Part shown: positions 7,402 to 59,494 of the stretch, piece after piece | How positions within the stretch are numbered: the stretch's first letter is position 1 | Layout: every line of letters starts with the position of its first letter | Assembly: GCF_006345805.1 (NCBI RefSeq) | Contig: NC_043011.1 | Span: 55,750,464 to 55,814,463 of the forward strand | Source of the DNA: Octopus sinensis | Taxonomy: Eukaryota | DNA: 64,000 bases | Direction of reading: 5' to 3' | The notes under the pieces: generated by a model | Seen by the model: the letters and a program-made list of their open reading frames with translations, nothing else | Databases searched by the model: none | Told to the model about the DNA's origin: nothing | Program-made: the position numbers and the translations under genes

Positions 7402-7504
7402 AAGAAAAGATTATCCATAACATAGTTGTAATCTTTTCGTCCTCGATCCGGAAGGAAACAACCAGAGAACACAATGATTGCATTGAGATCTTCACCCATA
7501 TAAC
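7402..7504 (-). CDS. PRUNE2: BCH domain exon (phase 1-2): [34 protein letters not shown]
   Basis: Acceptor TTTCCCATTTCAG, donor GTGAGT, 103 bp; matches the family pattern GYYGDGLNAIIVFAACFLP...YVMENLF. Confidence 0.97.
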
Positions 7505-7591
7505 CTGAAATGGGAAACAAAAGTTAGACATGAAAATAAATGCAACAAGGTACATCAATACTCTATATTTAATTGGTAGATTTTGAATTAA

Positions 7592-8265
7592 AAATAATAA
7601 TAATAATGAAATTATTGTATACAGTGCTCAGGTGCACCACAACTTGTCAAAAGTGCATATAAAGCATATGCAGTAATGTACAAATGTCTGGAAAGCGAAC
7701 AGTGTATGAGTCAGATACATGCTTGTGTGTGTATGGAGGGGAGAAAATCAGGTGTAGTGTTGGCGAATCTCAGGAAGCATGGAAGTTTTGAAGGATGCAG
7801 TGCTCCAACAACTAACAACCGATGCCGGCAGTTTGTTCCACGCTTCAGCAACTCTCAGTGTGAAGTCATGGGAGTTGTGCTGTTTTCTGACTTTGTAAAT
7901 ATGTCCACGGGTGTTAAACAGATGGAGTTTGAAAAGGTGCTCAGAGTTATTGTTTGTAAGATGGTTAGTAATCTTACGGGTGTCTGCCAAGTCAGCTGCC
8001 AGACGTCGGAGTTTCAATGTGTCCATGCCCAGGGAAGTAAGGCGTTCAGAATATGGCAAATGCCTGATGGAGGGTATTCTCTTGGTTGCACGTCGCTGAA
8101 CGGCTTCCAGAGGATTAATATCCTGGGCAAGATAGGGGTTCCAGACTGTGGTGATGCAAATTCCAGATGAGGTCGTACCATAGCTATATAAAGCCACAGA
8201 TAGATAGCTGGAGAGCGGCTCACAAACAATATGTAGAGAACAAATTAAACTCAAATATAAATGAA
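7592..8265 (-). mobile_element. CR1-clade LINE 3' fragment with RT C-terminus, frameshifted
   Basis: LYIAMVRPHLEFAS / VWNPYLAQDINPLEAVQRRATK / TRGHIYK / RVAEAWNKLP; (TAA)n tail. Confidence 0.92.
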
Positions 8266-9084
8266 ATGGGAAACTAGCATGCAATAATCCATGCCCACCA
8301 CCTTTCAAAAGGAGACAATAGACAGCCTGGTCATGTGACTGTTGTTATTCATCCCAGATGACTTCTGAACAAGCAAAACTATATTTCTCTGACAGTAGGA
8401 TATGATTTGAGTAAAATTTTGTTACTATCCCTTGAAGTCTAGCAACAATTTAAAGGCTTCCTCTGTGTTCTACAAACTACTGGAGGGACCACAACAATCA
8501 TTTTTGAACTGAAGATTCTGGTAAAATATCTTGGAATCCTTGGAGCTACAACTTAAAAAACATCACACAAGCTGAAAGCAATCATATTTAACAGAACCTG
8601 GTAAATTACAACCAAAGGTAGACACTCTTCAACCAAATTTAAATAACTTAGAGCAGGACTGGCTTTTAACACATTCAAACCTTTCGTTGCTCTATTCCCC
8701 CCTTGCTAATGTGTTTGTTTCAATGAATATTGAAAAGAAACTCTTAAAAAATGATGATGGAAGGTTTTCATTTAAATAGGCTGGTTTTTGCATGAGAGAA
8801 GCAGAGGCAAGTGTCAAGCAACCTGGTAGCAAAAGGGTTAATATTTATTACAGGAAAATCTAAAAAAGAACTCAGCAAAATACAAAACCAGTAATGTGTA
8901 AAAAGGGGTGATGGAATGACAGAAACCTGAACTGATAAAAAATGCATCAAGTAGTTTATTACTCCAATGAAGGCCACAGAAATTCAACCATAATCAATAC
9001 AAATACAATGGAGTTCAACAAAGGGAAAAGTAAAACTATTTTCAGTTGTTATGGAGAACACCTGAAATTGTGTACAGAACTTAC

Positions 9085-9087
9085 CTT
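9085..9087 (-). CDS. PRUNE2: Candidate 3-nt microexon (AAG) adding Glu: SHG-E-GY
   Basis: Minus strand reads TATTGTTTCCTTATTGATTACAG|AAG|GTAAGT; frame-preserving. No transcript evidence. Confidence 0.45.
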
Positions 9088-9126
9088 CTGTAATCAATAA
9101 GGAAACAATAGCTAGAATTTACACAC

Positions 9127-9375
9127 ATTATCATCATCATCGTTTAACGTCCACTTTCCATGCTAGCATGGGTTGGACGGTTCGACCGGGATCTGGGAAG
9201 CCAGGAGGCTGCACCAGGCTCCAGTCTGATCTGGCAGTGTTTCTACAGCTGGATGCCCTTCCTAATGTCAACCTCTCCGTGAGTGTAGTGGGTGCTTTTT
9301 ATGTGCCAGGGGAGGCTGGCAGCGGCCACAATCGGTTGGTGCTTTTTACGTGCCATCGGCACAGAAGCCAGTCAA
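9127..9375 (-). mobile_element. RTE 3'UTR repeat
   Basis: Reverse complement of the family consensus, (CAT)n at the left end. Confidence 0.85.
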
Positions 9376-9384
9376 GAGATGAAG

Positions 9385-10232
9385 CTTGTATGCTCTGCCT
9401 GATGTGTAATGTCAGAGTGCATACACGACAGAGTGTAAGAGCCCCGAGAGAAAAGTTGGACATAAGAGGCATCAGATGTGTTGTGCAAGACAGACCACTA
9501 TGCTAGTATGGTCATGTGTTGCATATGAATGAGGACAGCTGTGTGAAAAAGTGTCACACCCTAACAGTGGCGGGAACCTGTGGAAGAAGTAGAGCCAGGA
9601 AAACCTGGGATGAGGTAGTGAAGCACAACCTTCAAACATTGGGCCTCACAGAGGCAATGACAAGTGCCCAAGACCTTTGGAGATATGCTGTACTTGAGAA
9701 GACCCAGCAAGCCAAGTGAAATCACAGCAGTGACTGATGCCAGTATTGCATAACCAGCCCATTTAAAGGTACCCTTCAATCATCGGGCTATATGCTGTGC
9801 TTGAGAAGACCTGTTGAGGCAAGTGAAATCATTGTCATGACTGATAGCAGTGACACTTGACTGGCTCCCATGCTGGTGGCATGTAAAAAGCACTAATTTG
9901 AGTGTGGTCAATACCAGCGCCATCATACTGGCTCCTGTGCTGGTGACATGTAAAATGCACCATACGAACATGGTTGATACCAGTGCTGCCTGACTGGTCC
10001 CATGCTGGTGGCATGTAAAAAGCACCATTCGAATGTAGTCAATGCCAGTACCGCCTGACTGGTCCTGTGCTGGTGAAATGTAAGGAGCACCCACTACACT
10101 CACAAAGTGGTTGGTGTTAGGAAGGGCATGCAGCTGTTGAAACCTTGCCAGATCAGACTGGAACCTGGTACAGTCCTGTTAAACCATCCAACCCATGCCA
10201 GCATGGAAAGCGGACGTTAAATGATGATGATG
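9385..10232 (+). mobile_element. 5'-truncated RTE LINE: ORF2 C-terminus plus 3'UTR with ~66-bp tandem units
   Basis: EKLDIRGIRCVVQ...GRSRARKTWDEVVKHNL...DLWRYAV is an RTE C-terminal signature; (GAT)n tail. Confidence 0.9.
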
Positions 10233-10769
10233 AATTTTGTTTTAGCATGTCACAACTTAAATTTCAATAATTTTATTTGCTTCTAAAATGAGTTTTAATT
10301 CAAAATATGTATTTTAGAAAATAATTCCTGTTTTTTTTTTGTATTTTTTTTGTAGTGGGGATCATCCTGTAACATATCAAGAAAGAGGTACAGAACCACA
10401 TTCCCAAATTTATCCCAGACCAGTTTGAAGTATTCTTTTCGTTACATAAAACCAGCACATGCTACTTCCAACCTTCTTGTCCTGGTAGTTTCATATATTT
10501 TACAGTATTAAAACTACATGAAAAGCGCCTCATTTTTATTTTTGGACTAATTCTAGAAAACCGTTGATTCTCTTAGACAATCAAGAACCAAGAATTCAGC
10601 AGCTCATATCCTGTTAGTAGCCATCTTCCATGTCTGAAAGCAATAGAAGGAGTTTCTGTATGGACCAGTCACCTTCATTTCATGGCATTTACTCTGGAGA
10701 TAAGAATCCATCTTCATGTAGCAGTATTACAGAAAGAGTAAGTGCATTTTTTGCTTTTTTAATAATAAT

Positions 10770-10815
10770 AATAATAATGAAATTATTGTATACAGTGTTT
10801 AGGTGCACCACAACG
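10770..10815 (-). mobile_element. CR1 3'-end stub
   Basis: (AAT)n gaaattattgtatacagtgtttaggtgcaccacaac, as at 7592. Confidence 0.75.
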
Positions 10816-10825
10816 AAAATTTAAC

Positions 10826-11067
10826 AGTTCTAGTAATTATTTACATTTGACGGATATTTGTCCTCATCTTGTTAACACAACATTTCGGCTGATATACCCT
10901 CCAGCCTTCATCAGGTGTCTTGGGGGAAATTTCGAACCTGGGTTCTCATTCCTAAGGTATTTTTCGGTGTTATTATTATTATTCAGGTCACTGACTGGAA
11001 TCGAACTCGGAATCTTGGGGTTAGTAGCCCCATGATCTTAATGACTATGCCATATGCCCGTGGGCAT
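10826..11067 (-). mobile_element. tRNA-headed SINE-like element containing a hammerhead motif
   Basis: Minus strand: A-box-like TGGCATAGTCATTAAG, anticodon-like arm GGGCTACTAACCC, B box GAGTTCGATTCC, (AAT)n linker, then a hammerhead core near the 3' end. Confidence 0.75.
10874..10919 (-). ncRNA. Minimal type I hammerhead ribozyme motif (Penelope-like architecture)
   Basis: GACAC-CUGAUGA-A-GGCUG(10-nt loop)CAGCC-GAAA-UGUU-GUGUU. Helix II has 5 perfect bp and helix I is GACAC/GUGUU. Helix III reads AUGU where the typical palindrome is ACGU. Confidence 0.75.
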
Positions 11068-11479
11068 GGTATACTTCTTTCTATCACTTAACGACCTAAA
11101 TTACATTTAGAAATATAGTTAATTGCTTAACCCTGTTTTAGTGTAAACCTCCAAATTCCTAATCCGTCATCATCCTCTTTCTGCCTCTTCTACTGCTATT
11201 ATTATAACAGACTCTATCTTTCACCATTTGCTTCTTACTATCCAGAAATCAGAAATTTGTTCTTCTGAATATCCAAAGCAGCAGCAACAAACCCAAAACC
11301 AATTCCAACATTGAATCCTTAACTTTTGCTCATTTTTTTCTTTTTTCATTCCTTCAATTTCCCCGTTACTTCCACAGACACACTCTCACTGGCAACAGAC
11401 TCATTTCTGAAATGATGCTATACACAGGCAAAAGCTATTCCATGGTAGACGGACCAATAAAAGAACCCAGAACCCTTAC

Positions 11480-11638
11480 CTCCATGAGATAATATCTTCT
11501 TGTAAGGTTCCACTACTTTCATATCAATACGGAAATGCTTTTCCCCAATTACGATTGATTTCCAGTGTTTCGAATCAGTGTTTTCTTGTTCAGCAGTGTA
11601 TTCAGGAATGGTACTGGGAGACTCTAGTGGAGTCTCAC
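11480..11638 (-). CDS. PRUNE2: BNIP2/ATCAY/PRUNE2-like exon (phase 1-1): ETPLESPSTIPEYTAEQE...RIDMKVVEPYKKILSHG
   Basis: Acceptor TTCTTCCAG, donor GTAAGG, 159 bp; IPEYTA and RIDMKVxEPYKKxxSHGG are family hallmarks. Confidence 0.96.
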
Positions 11639-12343: not shown

Positions 12344-12547
12344 TTTCCCAGTCAACTTCCAAGCCTTCTGGATCGATTTCTTCAGGAGTATCCAAATCTT
12401 CTGGAGTCTGGAGGTCATCTATATCCCCCAACATACAGTCAACTGGTGGAGTGCAGTTGTCAGCTTCGACATCTTCATCATCAAATAATTCCACATTCGG
12501 TCTGATTTTCTTCTTGGGACGAATTGTTTGCAGAGTGGACGGTCGCA
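12344..12547 (-). CDS. PRUNE2: BNIP2/ATCAY/PRUNE2-like exon (phase 1-1), acidic region RPSTL...KKKIRP...DLDTPEE...LEVDWE
   Basis: Acceptor ATTTACAG, donor GTATGT, 204 bp; DLDTP and W-acidic motifs typical of the BNIP2 family. Confidence 0.92.
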
Positions 12548-12682: not shown

Positions 12683-12717
12683 TGTGTGTGAGTGTGTGTG
12701 TGTGTGTGTGCATGCGC

Positions 12718-12761
<44 letters not shown>

Positions 12762-12767
12762 ATGCGC

Positions 12768-12811
<44 letters not shown>

Positions 12812-12840
12812 ATGTGCATATATTTGTGCATGTGTGTATG
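12683..12840. repeat. Compound (TG)n microsatellite with catgcgcaca interruptions
   Basis: Seen directly; source of the spurious His-Thr and Cys-Val ORFs. Confidence 0.95.
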
Positions 12841-14884
12841 TAAAACTCTTCCACAATTTCTCATGCAAAAGCCATATATTCTGAAGTCTTAGGCAGCATC
12901 AAGACATTTTAAAAGAGAAAACTAATTCATTCTGAAAAAAATTAATAATTTTATAATTAGTAAAATCTCTTCCTACAGACTCCACCATCCATAACTGATT
13001 CTGTCATCTGTGACACAAGCCAGATGAAAGCCATTCAAGTTATCAATAAACCTTCCCTTAATCATCCTTCACCAATCTCCAGTTCATCAGTTACGACCTC
13101 CTTCCTCTCCCTTCACTTCTATTGTTGCTGTTTCAGTTTCTACCCTGAAACTGTTGCTTTCACACCAACATCACTGACAACAGTTTCCTTCACAACTTGT
13201 CAAAGTACTGCAGCACACAATATTCCTCTGGAATTCTATGGTTTTTACCTCTTTCTCCTCTCTACCTTACCAAAACACATCAACCTCATGCAATCTTACA
13301 ACATGGTTCCAGGTTTAGGTGAATTTGGTTCTTTCAAGAAAGAGTTTCACAAGGCATTTACAGATTTTAATACAGTTTACACAAACTGACAACACCTCCA
13401 AAAGATATTCTGATATAGCTTTCATTCAAAGAGATACCAAAATATTTCTTGAACAGAAACTCTGTAGTAATGTTTCTTTCTTTTTTTTTTTTTTTTCCTT
13501 TTTGGACAAAATGGTACAGCTTTAAATGTGAAGCTTCAAAATTTCCACTGTAACATTTCAAGAAGCATTTGGCACTCTTGGTTTTAGTTCTTCATAGATT
13601 AACTGCTTGGAAACTCCGGAGTCTACGAAGTGACTCTTCCAGCTCATAGGATATGTTTTGAAGATCATACATTCAAAACCAAAGACTTTTATTCATTCAA
13701 GAGCTTTCAGTGTCAAAAATTAAAGTTTCCTATTTCACTCTTAGCAGCATTAATGGAGGCATAGTCGTTCTGAGTGTTTATGGTGTGTGTGTATGTGTGT
13801 GCACGTGCATTATGTATTCACGTATGCGTGTGTGTGTGTGCATGTATGTATTCGCGTATGTATGTGTGCATATATGTATGTATTCATGTGTATGTGTGTG
13901 GATATATATATAGTGTGCAGTTTGCTTGTTGGTAGAATCAGCAAGAAGTACTCAATCCAGTAAGAGGTACATATCATTTAATGAATACAAAGTTACATAT
14001 GAACCAATTAACATTTCATGTTTAAATAGTGCAGTAATTGGATGGGTTTTTATTGCATACCATGCACAATCCAGCAATTGTTCAGGGTAAAATGACGTGG
14101 ATACTCCAAGAGGAAATGCAAAACAAACTGAGTTTAAATAACAAGCAAAACACTAGACAGTCAAGGTGGGGATAGTAGAGAGATTTAGGCCATATATTAA
14201 TGAGTCATAAAGGTGCAGGCTCAGTATAGCTGAAAGAACACACATCCTTATTAGATTGAAGATCTGCCCCGACTTTATAAAATTTTTACAAAATGTATGC
14301 ATCTTGATAAGTTTCTGTTACTGAACTGGAAGACACTCTCACCCCTCACCAGATTAGACATACTAATTAAAACACTTTAGCCTTTCCTTTTTTTGATTAC
14401 CTCCACTAGCCATAGTTTTTTTTTGTGTAAACAGTCAACATTAACAATACTTTTCAATTAATGGATTAAAGAAACATAGTCTTTATCCTGCTGCCCTTAA
14501 CGTTTCATCTTATTTTTTCTTGCAGTTTTTTTCCTTCCATTTCCTCATGGAGAAGGCAATTGCAGACTGTGCATGGTACACTATACAAAGCTGACCAATT
14601 ACTGCACTGTCCAAGCACGAAACTTGATGTAGCTCATATAATTCCTCCATTCATAAAATTTTCAACATGTAACCACGTGTGTATCGTTGGCAATTTTCTT
14701 CCTGTATCTTCCCTTCTTTTGGACTTTCTTCTATTTCTGAAGAACTTTGCTCGAAATGTAAAATCCTCTTTCTTTCCTTTCCTGAGTGTCTGATAATACA
14801 ATACTTGCACCACATCTTTGTGTTGTTTTTCTTGTTTGTTCTTCTTTGTTTGGATTCACTATATATATATGTATATATATATTT

Positions 14885-22305: not shown

Positions 22306-22563
22306 ATTGGCATGTAAAAAGTACCAACCGATCATGGCCGTTGCCAACCTCCCCTGGCACCTGTGCCAGTGGCACGTAAAAAGCATCCGCTATAATCATG
22401 GAGTGGTTGGTGTTAGGAAGGGCATCCAGCTGTAGAAACACTGCCAGATCAGACTGGAGCCTGGTGCAGCCTCCTGGCTTCCCAGGTCCCGGTTGAACCG
22501 TCCAACCCATGCTAGCATGGAAAATGGACATTAAACGATGATGATGATGATGATGATGATGAT
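22306..22563 (+). mobile_element. RTE 3'UTR repeat with long (GAT)n tail
   Basis: Family consensus. Confidence 0.85.
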
Positions 22564-31214: not shown

Positions 31215-31679
31215 AATTTATGCATGTGTTTGTGGCCAAAGCCAATACTGCCTGCCTAAGGCACCATTTGAGTGTGGTCGATGCCAGTGCCACCTGACTG
31301 GCTCCTGTGCTGGTGGCACAAAAAATGCACCACATGAATTTGGTTGATGCCAGGGCCACCTGACTGGCTCCTGTGCTGGTGGCACAAAAAATGCACCACA
31401 TGAATTTGGTTGATGCCAGTTACACCTAACTGGTCCTATGCTGGCGGCACATAAAAAGCAGCATTCAAGCATGGTCATTGCCAGTGCCGCCTGACTAGCC
31501 CTTGTGCCAGTGGAATGTAAAAAGCACCCACTATATTCTGAGAGTGGTTGGCGTTAAGAAAGGCACCCAGCTGTAGAAACCATGCCAGATCAGACTGGAC
31601 CCTGGTGAAGCCTTCTGCTGTCAAACCGTCCAATCCATGCCAGTATGGAAAGCGGACGTTAAATGATGATGATGATGAT
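31215..31679 (+). mobile_element. RTE 3'UTR repeat with ~5 tandem 66-bp units
   Basis: atgccag starts at 31281, 31347 and 31413; consensus tail follows. Confidence 0.88.
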
Positions 31680-41067: not shown

Positions 41068-41365
41068 CATTCATCATCATCATTGTTTAACGTCCACTTT
41101 CCATGCTAGCATAGATTGGACGGTTTGACCGGGGTCTGAGAAGCCAGGAGGCTGCACCAAGCTCCAGTCTGATCTGGCAGTGTTTCTACAGCTGGATGCC
41201 CTTCTTAACGCCAACCACTCCGTGAGTGTAGTGGGTGCTTTTTACATGCCAGGCGAGGCTGGCGACGGCTACGATCAGTTGGTGCTTTTTATGTGCCAGT
41301 CGAGGCGGCGCTGGCAACGGCCATGTTCGGATGGATTTTTTATGTGCCACAGACACTGGTATCAC
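41068..41365 (-). mobile_element. RTE 3'UTR repeat
   Basis: Family consensus, reverse orientation. Confidence 0.85.
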
Positions 41366-58789: not shown

Positions 58790-59109
58790 CAAGTGCCGGT
58801 GACACGTAAAAACACCACCCGAACGTGGCCGTTGCCAGCACCGCCTCGACTGGCCTCCGTGCCGGTGGCACATAAAAAGCACCAACTGATCATGGCCGTT
58901 GCCAGCTTCACCTGGCACCTGTGCTAGTGACACGTAAAAAGCACCCACTACACTCACGGAGTGGTTGGCGTTAGGAAGGGCATCCAGCTGTAGAAACACT
59001 GCCAGATCAGACTGGGCTTGGTGCAGCCTCCTGGCTTCCCAGACCCTGGTTGAACCGTCCAACCCATGCCAGCATGGAAAGCAGATGTTAAACGATGATG
59101 ATGATGATG
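58790..59109 (+). mobile_element. RTE 3'UTR repeat
   Basis: Family consensus with (GAT)n tail. Confidence 0.85.
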
Positions 59110-59494
59110 TTTTGAATCAAATCTTGCACTATCTCATAACTCTGAGATTTTAAAGCTGTAATTGTATATTCTTAGAATGACATTATAGAGTAGGTGTGAA
59201 AGGCCAGATCTTGTTGGTTTAAACATAAAACAGGTAGAAAATTTAGTTAGTTTGAATACCAAAGGGTTAACACATAAAAAAAAACTGGATATTTCCATTA
59301 ATTTCCTTCATTTCTTCCCCTCATTCTTTGTTCTTTACAAGGATTTAAATGCCACAAAATGGGCTCTCTTCAACAGATTACAAAATATTGACAAACATTT
59401 TGGAATTCTTTTTTTGCAGTAAATGTGCAGAGCTTAGTTGTTCTGTTTGCTGTAATTATGAGTCTTGTAATATATCATTATTATTATTATTATT

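Follow-up and report, generated by a model that had tools for sequence, protein, structure and literature searches.

In the phase-1 intron that interrupts the SHGGY motif of a PRUNE2-type gene of Octopus sinensis, the minus strand of the 64-kb stretch of DNA analysed here (64,000 nucleotides of contig NC_043011.1; hereafter, the window) carries an acceptor-like CAG and a consensus donor that enclose exactly three nucleotides, CAG-AAG-GTAAGT. We consider this arrangement to be most probably fortuitous or cryptic and not meaningfully included in mRNA, and put the probability of this reading at roughly 0.6. The acceptor-like CAG and the donor would have been juxtaposed by chance in a young, transposon-expanded and lineage-specific part of the intron, and the motif would probably be silent or give rise to noise-level cryptic use, with no regulated, selected microexon. 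Its setting, in contrast, is real: the ancient phase-1 intron in the SHG^GY codon, into which mammals would have independently gained a 9-nt microexon, GAGATTCAG, encoding Gly-Asp-Ser (GDS). We prefer this reading because the decapodiform and oyster introns show no conservation of the motif and no insertion was seen outside mammals; because a short interspersed element (SINE) ends 38 nt upstream, in an intron with 32.5% repeats, a long interspersed element (LINE) fragment and unmatched flanks; because the acceptor is modest (longest pyrimidine run of 7 versus 12 in the tarsier microexon, a branch-point match missing from its usual place, no UGC in the 80 nt upstream); and because an inserted Glu would break an HGGY motif that is invariant and lies in a beta-strand.

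A consensus-flanked triplet in the octopus PRUNE2 gene

The host is a BNIP2/BCH-family gene in which a BNIP2 motif region is followed by a CRAL_TRIO_2 (BCH) domain, as detected by tblastn and Pfam (PF12496, E=7.5e-19; PF13716, E=4.7e-27). Its spliced protein is 98.9% identical over 262 amino acids to PRUNE2 isoform X2 of Octopus bimaculoides (P0457), the N-terminus of which has DHH and DHHA2 domains (PF01368, PF02833). It is 92% identical to the PRUNE2-like X1 protein of Argonauta hians (P0315); to P0008, a PRUNE2 of cuttlefish type from a cluster that includes Acanthosepion pharaonis PRUNE2, identity is 86%. Judged by these similarities, the gene is a PRUNE2 orthologue. The features of the junction are as follows (a slash marks an exon boundary).

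11480..11638, minus strand: upstream exon, encoding (S)ETPLESPSTIPEYTAEQENTDSKHWKSIVIGEKHFRIDMKVVEPYKKILSHG(G); ends ...AAG ATA TTA TCT CAT GGA G/gtaagg
7505..11479, minus strand: host intron, 3975 nt, phase 1; splits the second Gly codon of SHGGY (...KKILSHG^GYMGEDL...)
9088..9110, minus strand: acceptor-like signal, tattgtttccttattgatta plus CAG; acceptor matrix score 3.94
9085..9087, minus strand: candidate 3-nt exon, AAG; in frame and free of stops
9079..9084, minus strand: donor-like signal, AAG/GTAAGT, a perfect U1 consensus; donor matrix score 7.95
7402..7504, minus strand: downstream exon, encoding (G), 33 residues and (L); starts ttcag/GT TAT ATG GGT
Predicted inclusion junction: TCTCATGGAG-AAG-GTTATATGGGTG, with inclusion k-mer ATTATCTCATGGAGAAGGTTATATGGGTGAAG and skipping k-mer ATTATCTCATGGAGGTTATATGGGTGAAG

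On the minus strand, window positions 9110..9079 read tattgtttccttattgattaCAG/AAG/GTAAGT, with AAG at 9087-9085. Its inclusion would convert the split codon into G/AA G/GT (Glu-Gly) and thereby place one Glu between both Gly of SHGGY, giving SHG-E-GY. Use of another donor or acceptor at the two flanking exons could not yield such an AAG insertion. The triplet thus has AG and GT flanks on the sense strand of an intron, a length that is a multiple of three and no stop, whereas conservation of exon and flanks in relatives was not found in the decapodiform and oyster sequences compared.

We scored the signals with position weight matrices covering a 20-nt pyrimidine tract, -3 and +1 for acceptors, and -3 to +6 for donors; the matrix frequencies follow human splice-site tables in approximate form, which makes all scores approximate. 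With 7.95, the candidate donor exceeds all six real donors scored in the gene and is among just six minus-strand sites that reach 7 or more over the whole strand of the window. The acceptor, at 3.94, lies in the middle of the range of the gene's six real acceptors (-2.4 to 9.8). Its tract extends over ~20 nt and is interrupted by six purines (70% pyrimidine), with the longest uninterrupted pyrimidine run being 7 nt. Matches to the branch-point pattern yUnAy upstream of AAG occur at -11 and -7 only, and none lies at the usual distance, a test that is uninformative in this gene, as two of its real acceptors likewise lack a match there. The TGC closest to the candidate exon is 81 nt upstream (-81). 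Exons of the eMIC/SRRM4 type have a UGC close to the acceptor, on its upstream side, together with a long pyrimidine tract, a combination not present here. Real microexons typically lie within strongly conserved flanks with long pyrimidine tracts, and 3-nt exons make up a very small fraction of those known. Acceptor and donor complexes only 3 nt apart are, moreover, not jointly recognisable by exon definition.

An earlier note, made from the letters of this DNA, had described the motif, its perfect consensus donor and an inclusion that keeps the frame, and all of these statements held when checked. So did its assignment of the host to the BNIP2/BCH family, borne out by the Pfam domains and the 98.9% identity to O. 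bimaculoides PRUNE2 X2, and its two caveats, namely that no UGC is nearby (the closest being at -81) and that an RTE tail lies close to the acceptor (the repeat ending 38 nt upstream of the exon).

The host intron is rich in transposable elements

Of the host intron, 32.5% consists of repeats that recur in other parts of the window. The intron includes two elements in sense orientation.

9125..9376, minus strand: SINE/RTE-tail repeat, sense orientation, ~250 nt, with a (GAT)n tail; 17 hits in the 64-kb window at 72-91% identity, ending at 9125-9131
7748..8308, minus strand: LINE reverse-transcriptase C-terminus fragment, sense orientation; 186-amino-acid open reading frame (ORF) with ...NPYLAQDINPLEAVQRRATKRIP...YSERLTSLGMDTLKLRR...

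The end of the SINE/RTE-tail repeat (9125/9126) is what lies 38 nt upstream of the candidate exon. Further copies are located, for example, at 41068-41298, 58845-59110 and 22308-22552. The ORF at 7748..8308 is presumably that of a LINE (non-LTR) reverse transcriptase, an assignment made from its motifs and not from a database match; a segment of the intron at 7588-8055 is itself repeated in the window. Tandem arrays with a 65-66-nt unit in 3-4 copies (74-88% matches) were observed at 9844-10091 and 31261-31507, the former overlapping the most repeated segment of the intron (9790-10243, up to 23 hits). These arrays are probably the internal tandem region of another interspersed element.

The intron, candidate flanks included, showed no similarity to the decapodiform or oyster loci. 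In metagenomes, neither an exact-pattern scan around the motif nor a second around the end of the exon returned a match, and exact look-up of the 52-amino-acid antisense ORF that crosses the motif and of the 88-amino-acid read-through ORF of the upstream exon yielded no record. The octopus intron has been inflated by transposons, and the context of the triplet looks young and unconstrained.

An old intron position and a mammalian microexon

In human PRUNE2, a 9-nt microexon within the CRAL-TRIO domain (chr9:79256888-79256896, hg19) has been confirmed in endothelial cells through PCR after reverse transcription (RT-PCR), with percent-spliced-in (PSI) values of 23-77% (PMC8641155). The RT-PCR primers of that study encode VIEPYRR... 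and ...YGDGLNA and therefore bracket exactly the SHG^GY junction. Protein searches returned SHG-[GDS]-GYYG beside SHGGYYG forms in many mammals. In tarsier genomic DNA (L002), the upstream exon ends CAT GGA G/gtagtc, the microexon reads ...ttttacttgtcttatttcgttatag/GAGATTCAG/gtaacc at L002 16998-17006 and inserts GDS, and the next exon (GA TAC TAT) follows at ~21060. The tarsier microexon stands after a ~55-nt pyrimidine-rich tract, in which the longest pyrimidine run is 12 nt, and has no TGC in the ~60 nt upstream. Position and phase of the intron are the same as in octopus (phase 1, inside SHG^GY).

The mammalian exon and the octopus triplet thus have in common the gene family, the phase-1 SHG^GY intron, frame preservation, the location at the BNIP2/BCH (CRAL-TRIO) boundary, AG and GT flanks, and the rank of top-scoring pair in the intron. 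They differ in what they would insert, nine nucleotides for GDS versus three for E, and in its consequence: the mammalian insert begins and ends with bases that complete a G codon, and HGG and GY both re-form around it, whereas GG would be parted by the octopus triplet. They differ also in their upstream signal (~55 nt of pyrimidine-rich tract versus ~20 nt interrupted by purines), and in their standing: RT-PCR and numerous protein records of mammals attest the mammalian exon, and the octopus triplet is a candidate from genomic sequence. An orthologous exon would be expected in the same intron, where the triplet indeed lies; similarity in length and sequence (AAG versus GAGATTCAG) and a trace of the exon in intervening lineages were not found.

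We inspected the junction in ~450 proteins of the BNIP2 family. Insertions were confined to mammalian PRUNE2, with twelve in the first sets and two more among the representatives clustered at 50% identity.

Insertion-bearing proteins (all mammalian): P0095, P0099, P0147-P0156, P0347, P0355

No junction insertion was seen in birds, squamates, amphibians, teleosts, holosteans or sharks, many of them with 5-17 RefSeq isoforms, nor in crustaceans, oysters, scallops or a brachiopod, nor in seven decapodiform cephalopod proteins, of which five are derived from transcripts. Among octopods, the protein models of O. bimaculoides PRUNE2 X2 and Argonauta hians X1 have no Glu at the junction. At the level of DNA, a CAT GGA G/gt intron junction is common to octopus, decapodiform, oyster and tarsier, and an intron at this position is suggested for birds by partial gene models ending in SHGGRK, while some other invertebrates read through the junction without an intron (P0002-P0004). 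The orthologous decapodiform intron (L001, 10246-10388) is 143 nt long and contains no AG...GT pair at a frame-preserving spacing of 3-30 nt. In the 560-nt oyster intron, the best pair scores 2.2 and nothing in it is credible. With 143 nt in the decapodiform and 3975 nt in octopus, the SHG^GY intron differs 28-fold in length; the neighbouring introns in the sequenced stretch differ without consistent direction.

By these comparisons, the intron position is old and shared by mammals and molluscs, and among the sequences sampled the exon is confined to mammals. This suggests that the GDS microexon is a mammal-specific gain in an intron position shared with molluscs. The statement in the earlier note that vertebrate PRUNE2 isoforms differ at SHG^GY was right for mammals, with their 9-nt microexon and SHG-[GDS]-GYYG forms, and found no support in other vertebrates, where no insertion was seen. 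Its suggestion of an ancient conserved microexon site was not supported, for the reasons above: no insertion outside mammals in ~450 proteins, decapodiform and oyster introns that lack a counterpart, and a mammalian exon of other length and sequence. Nor did the CAG-AAG-GTAAGT island that it proposed to look for in other molluscs appear in the two introns that we compared, decapodiform and oyster.

An ancient bilaterian or lophotrochozoan microexon, orthologous to that of vertebrate PRUNE2, is accordingly largely refuted, and we regard it as extremely improbable. It would account for the shared position and phase of the intron in tarsier, oyster, decapodiform and octopus and for the presence of a microexon there in mammals. 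Against it stand the difference between AAG (3 nt) and GAGATTCAG (9 nt), the uninterrupted junction of the non-mammalian vertebrate and invertebrate sequences inspected, despite their many RefSeq isoforms, the empty 143-nt decapodiform intron, the oyster intron without a credible pair, and P0002-P0004 with no intron at the site at all. In a study of 20 species, O. bimaculoides among them, no more than two neural exons, one in APBB and one in MADD, were inferred to date back to the bilaterian ancestor (bioRxiv 10.64898/2026.09.05.749416). As for the wider gene family, we found no paper in the literature that ties a microexon to ATCAY, and mentions of BNIP2 were incidental.

The insertion would split an invariant motif

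HGGY is invariant in an alignment of 45 sequences and was unbroken in every non-mammalian sequence inspected. We modelled P0008 with AlphaFold using this alignment, as a single-sequence model was unusable (predicted local distance difference test [pLDDT] of 40). In the alignment-based model, HGGY falls into a beta-strand (E241-247) that pairs with the NAIIVFS strand, with a mean pLDDT of 71 for residues 241-250. One added Glu would come between the two Gly and put the strand out of register.

Signal quality, rarity and a permissive junction

Several observations weigh against a fortuitous or cryptic origin. We scanned both strands of the window (128 kb) for acceptor/donor pairs 3-27 nt apart, in multiples of three, with 150 dinucleotide-preserving shuffles as the null. 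The bare 12-mer pattern CAGNNNGTAAGT is unremarkable by itself (0.49 expected per window, both strands). Yet the candidate is the sole pair with a summed score of at least 9 in the 128 kb. Shuffled sequences reach its score 0.20 times per window for pairs of any length and 0.02 times for length 3. This corresponds to a chance expectation of ~0.006 (any length) and ~0.0006 (length 3) in the host intron, and of ~0.05 and ~0.005, respectively, over the ~30 kb of the gene's sense strand that the window contains. Among the 22 AGNNNGT heptamers in the intron, the candidate scores 11.9, the next 7.1 and the others below 0. As a positive control, the same scan of the 8.8-kb tarsier intron gave its highest rank to the true PRUNE2 microexon, whose summed score of 10.1 the octopus candidate exceeds. 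The triplet further lies on the sense strand, in frame and free of stops, in the very intron that hosts the mammalian microexon.

The junction also tolerates changes in length, as indicated by the mammalian isoforms and by the BCH domain of ARHGAP1 (PDB 6r3v), which aligns with two extra residues exactly at shg..gy. Finally, microexons and neural exons are reported to have evolved often, repeatedly and independently in the same genes (bioRxiv 10.64898/2026.09.05.749416), and 3-nt exons are regularly overlooked during annotation and assembly (PMC7821500), so that absence from predicted proteins is weak evidence. The splice signals of the triplet are as good as those of a proven microexon and statistics alone cannot dismiss it; at the same time, the motif is uncommon by chance rather than impossible, and it was picked out after the sequence had been read.

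Two other pairs in the intron did not qualify as microexons: an 18-nt pair at 9577-9560 contains a stop, and a GTG triplet at 8301-8299 scores 7.1 only.

These observations are what a genuine microexon has in its favour. It would be octopod-specific, alternatively included and independent of the mammalian 9-nt exon, adding the Glu of SHG-E-GY at the BNIP2/BCH boundary. Splicing would be sequential and intron-defined, the upstream 2.4-kb intron first being joined to CAG/, upon which GGAG-AAG/GTAAGT would offer a perfect donor with which to excise the remaining 1.6 kb downstream. Strong and rare signals, the behaviour of the tarsier control, a frame kept without a stop, the lack of another viable exon that ends at its donor, a junction that takes an alternative insert in mammals (PSI 23-77%, endothelial cells) and tolerates an indel in ARHGAP1, 3-nt precedents in cytohesin-1/2 (PMC6314551) and RPS24, and the reported frequency of recurrent neural exon evolution all speak for it. 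On the other side are its absence from the O. bimaculoides and Argonauta protein models, the lack of a decapodiform or oyster counterpart, the SINE 38 nt upstream, the short pyrimidine tract, the missing UGC and usual-distance branch point, and the split of HGGY. On balance, we hold such an exon to be unlikely.

Since ancient conservation is lacking and recurrent evolution has been reported, the octopus triplet, if real, would be a lineage-specific, convergent gain. Octopods would then have independently evolved, within a transposon-expanded intron, a 3-nt microexon that places an acidic residue in the same BCH/CRAL-TRIO beta-strand (that of HGGY) that mammals modify by GDS, a case of convergence at a single structural hot spot between two large-brained lineages that we consider slightly more doubtful again.

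In weighing these readings, we set the prior for a real 3-nt exon in a given intron of such a gene at ~10^-4 to 10^-3 and raised it several-fold because the junction is demonstrably permissive. Signal quality contributes a likelihood ratio of a few hundred for the intron, or of about ten to forty when allowing for a scan of the whole gene. A drop of perhaps twofold comes from each of four points, namely the lack of conservation, the SINE, the modest tract and the disruption of the invariant motif. The balance favours a fortuitous or cryptic site, with part of the probability left unassigned to any reading, and the octopus triplet is presumably not spliced in.

A recursive splice site or decoy

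The same letters could serve splicing without leaving a trace in mRNA. As CAG is followed by AAG, the motif also forms a NAGNAG-type tandem, and use of the distal AG would make AAG/GTAAGT a zero-length ratchet, a recursive or stepwise splice site at which the donor is regenerated; alternatively, the donor might merely bind U1 as a decoy. The AG/GTAAGT following a pyrimidine-rich stretch and the place of the donor among the six sites of the strand that score at least 7 are compatible with such a role. However, for acceptor and donor to abut in this ratchet geometry, splicing has to use the weak distal AAG acceptor, which has a disfavoured A at -3 and would lose out to the proximal CAG. The introns in which recursive sites are known are tens of kilobases long, whereas this one measures only 4 kb, and no conservation was found. 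Longer exons that end at the candidate donor would start at acceptors inside the SINE (9192 and 9315), and the resulting exons of 108 nt and 231 nt contain 5 and 6 stops, respectively, so that no alternative exon ending at this donor would be viable. We therefore regard a recursive site or decoy as improbable.

Known 3-nt and neural microexons

With the neural microexons that depend on eMIC/SRRM4, the triplet shares its shortness, frame preservation, a strong donor and a gene with neural paralogues. It lacks their defining feature, a UGC close upstream of the acceptor (-81 in octopus), as does the tarsier exon, with no TGC in ~60 nt. Lone triplets spliced as exons, as proposed for octopus, exist in NCAM1—where the triplet is reportedly literally AAG, a finding said to go back to Santoni et al. 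in 1989—and in RPS24; both are cDNA-validated cases in unrelated genes and say nothing on the octopus locus. For the effect that a Glu in the BCH/CRAL-TRIO domain might have, the closest functional parallel is cytohesin-1/2, in which a 3-nt cassette likewise adds one residue inside a structured lipid-binding domain: the resulting diglycine and triglycine variants of the PH domain differ in ligand specificity, with a PSI of 66-76% in cell lines (PMC6314551). That exon, unlike the octopus candidate, is conserved and experimentally validated, belongs to another fold and gene family, and inserts Gly instead of Glu.

Were the octopus triplet spliced in, it would join a very short list of 3-nt exons, and cephalopods and mammals would provide a clean instance of microexons that evolved repeatedly at one residue of one domain. 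This would point to the strand with HGGY, where BNIP2 and BCH meet, as a tunable switch for partner or lipid binding by PRUNE2-type scaffolds. If it is not spliced, as we favour, transposon-rich introns of cephalopods can give rise to a perfect-looking pair with a higher score than that of a proven microexon, and microexon calls made from sequence only therefore need RNA or comparative support. Either way, the intron position of the mammalian PRUNE2 microexon is conserved between mammals and molluscs, with the exon itself present in mammals only among the sequences sampled.

Further features of the locus

The gene spans at least 30 kb of the minus strand and has very long introns. Beyond the two exons that flank the host intron, the following were placed.

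12547-12344, minus strand: further PRUNE2 exon
16469-16233, minus strand: further PRUNE2 coding exon, matching residues 1242-1321 of O. bimaculoides PRUNE2 X2
32506-32369, minus strand: further PRUNE2 coding exon, matching residues 1199-1241 of O. bimaculoides PRUNE2 X2

The real exon that starts at 11638 begins CAG/GTGAGA, its acceptor abutting a donor-like hexamer (11638-11633; donor score 7.39) that is one of the six sites of the strand scoring at least 7. By its sequence, a true exon start thus has the hallmark of a recursive splice site. A long microsatellite, (TG)n-rich and with a higher-order period of 50 nt, occupies 12683-12841, immediately upstream of the exon at 12547. In Argonauta hians, a second PRUNE2-like model of 1365 amino acids (P0456), on a contig other than that of P0315, is 89% identical to the N-terminal 75% of P0315, without the BNIP2/BCH region, and may represent a duplication or an assembly haplotig.

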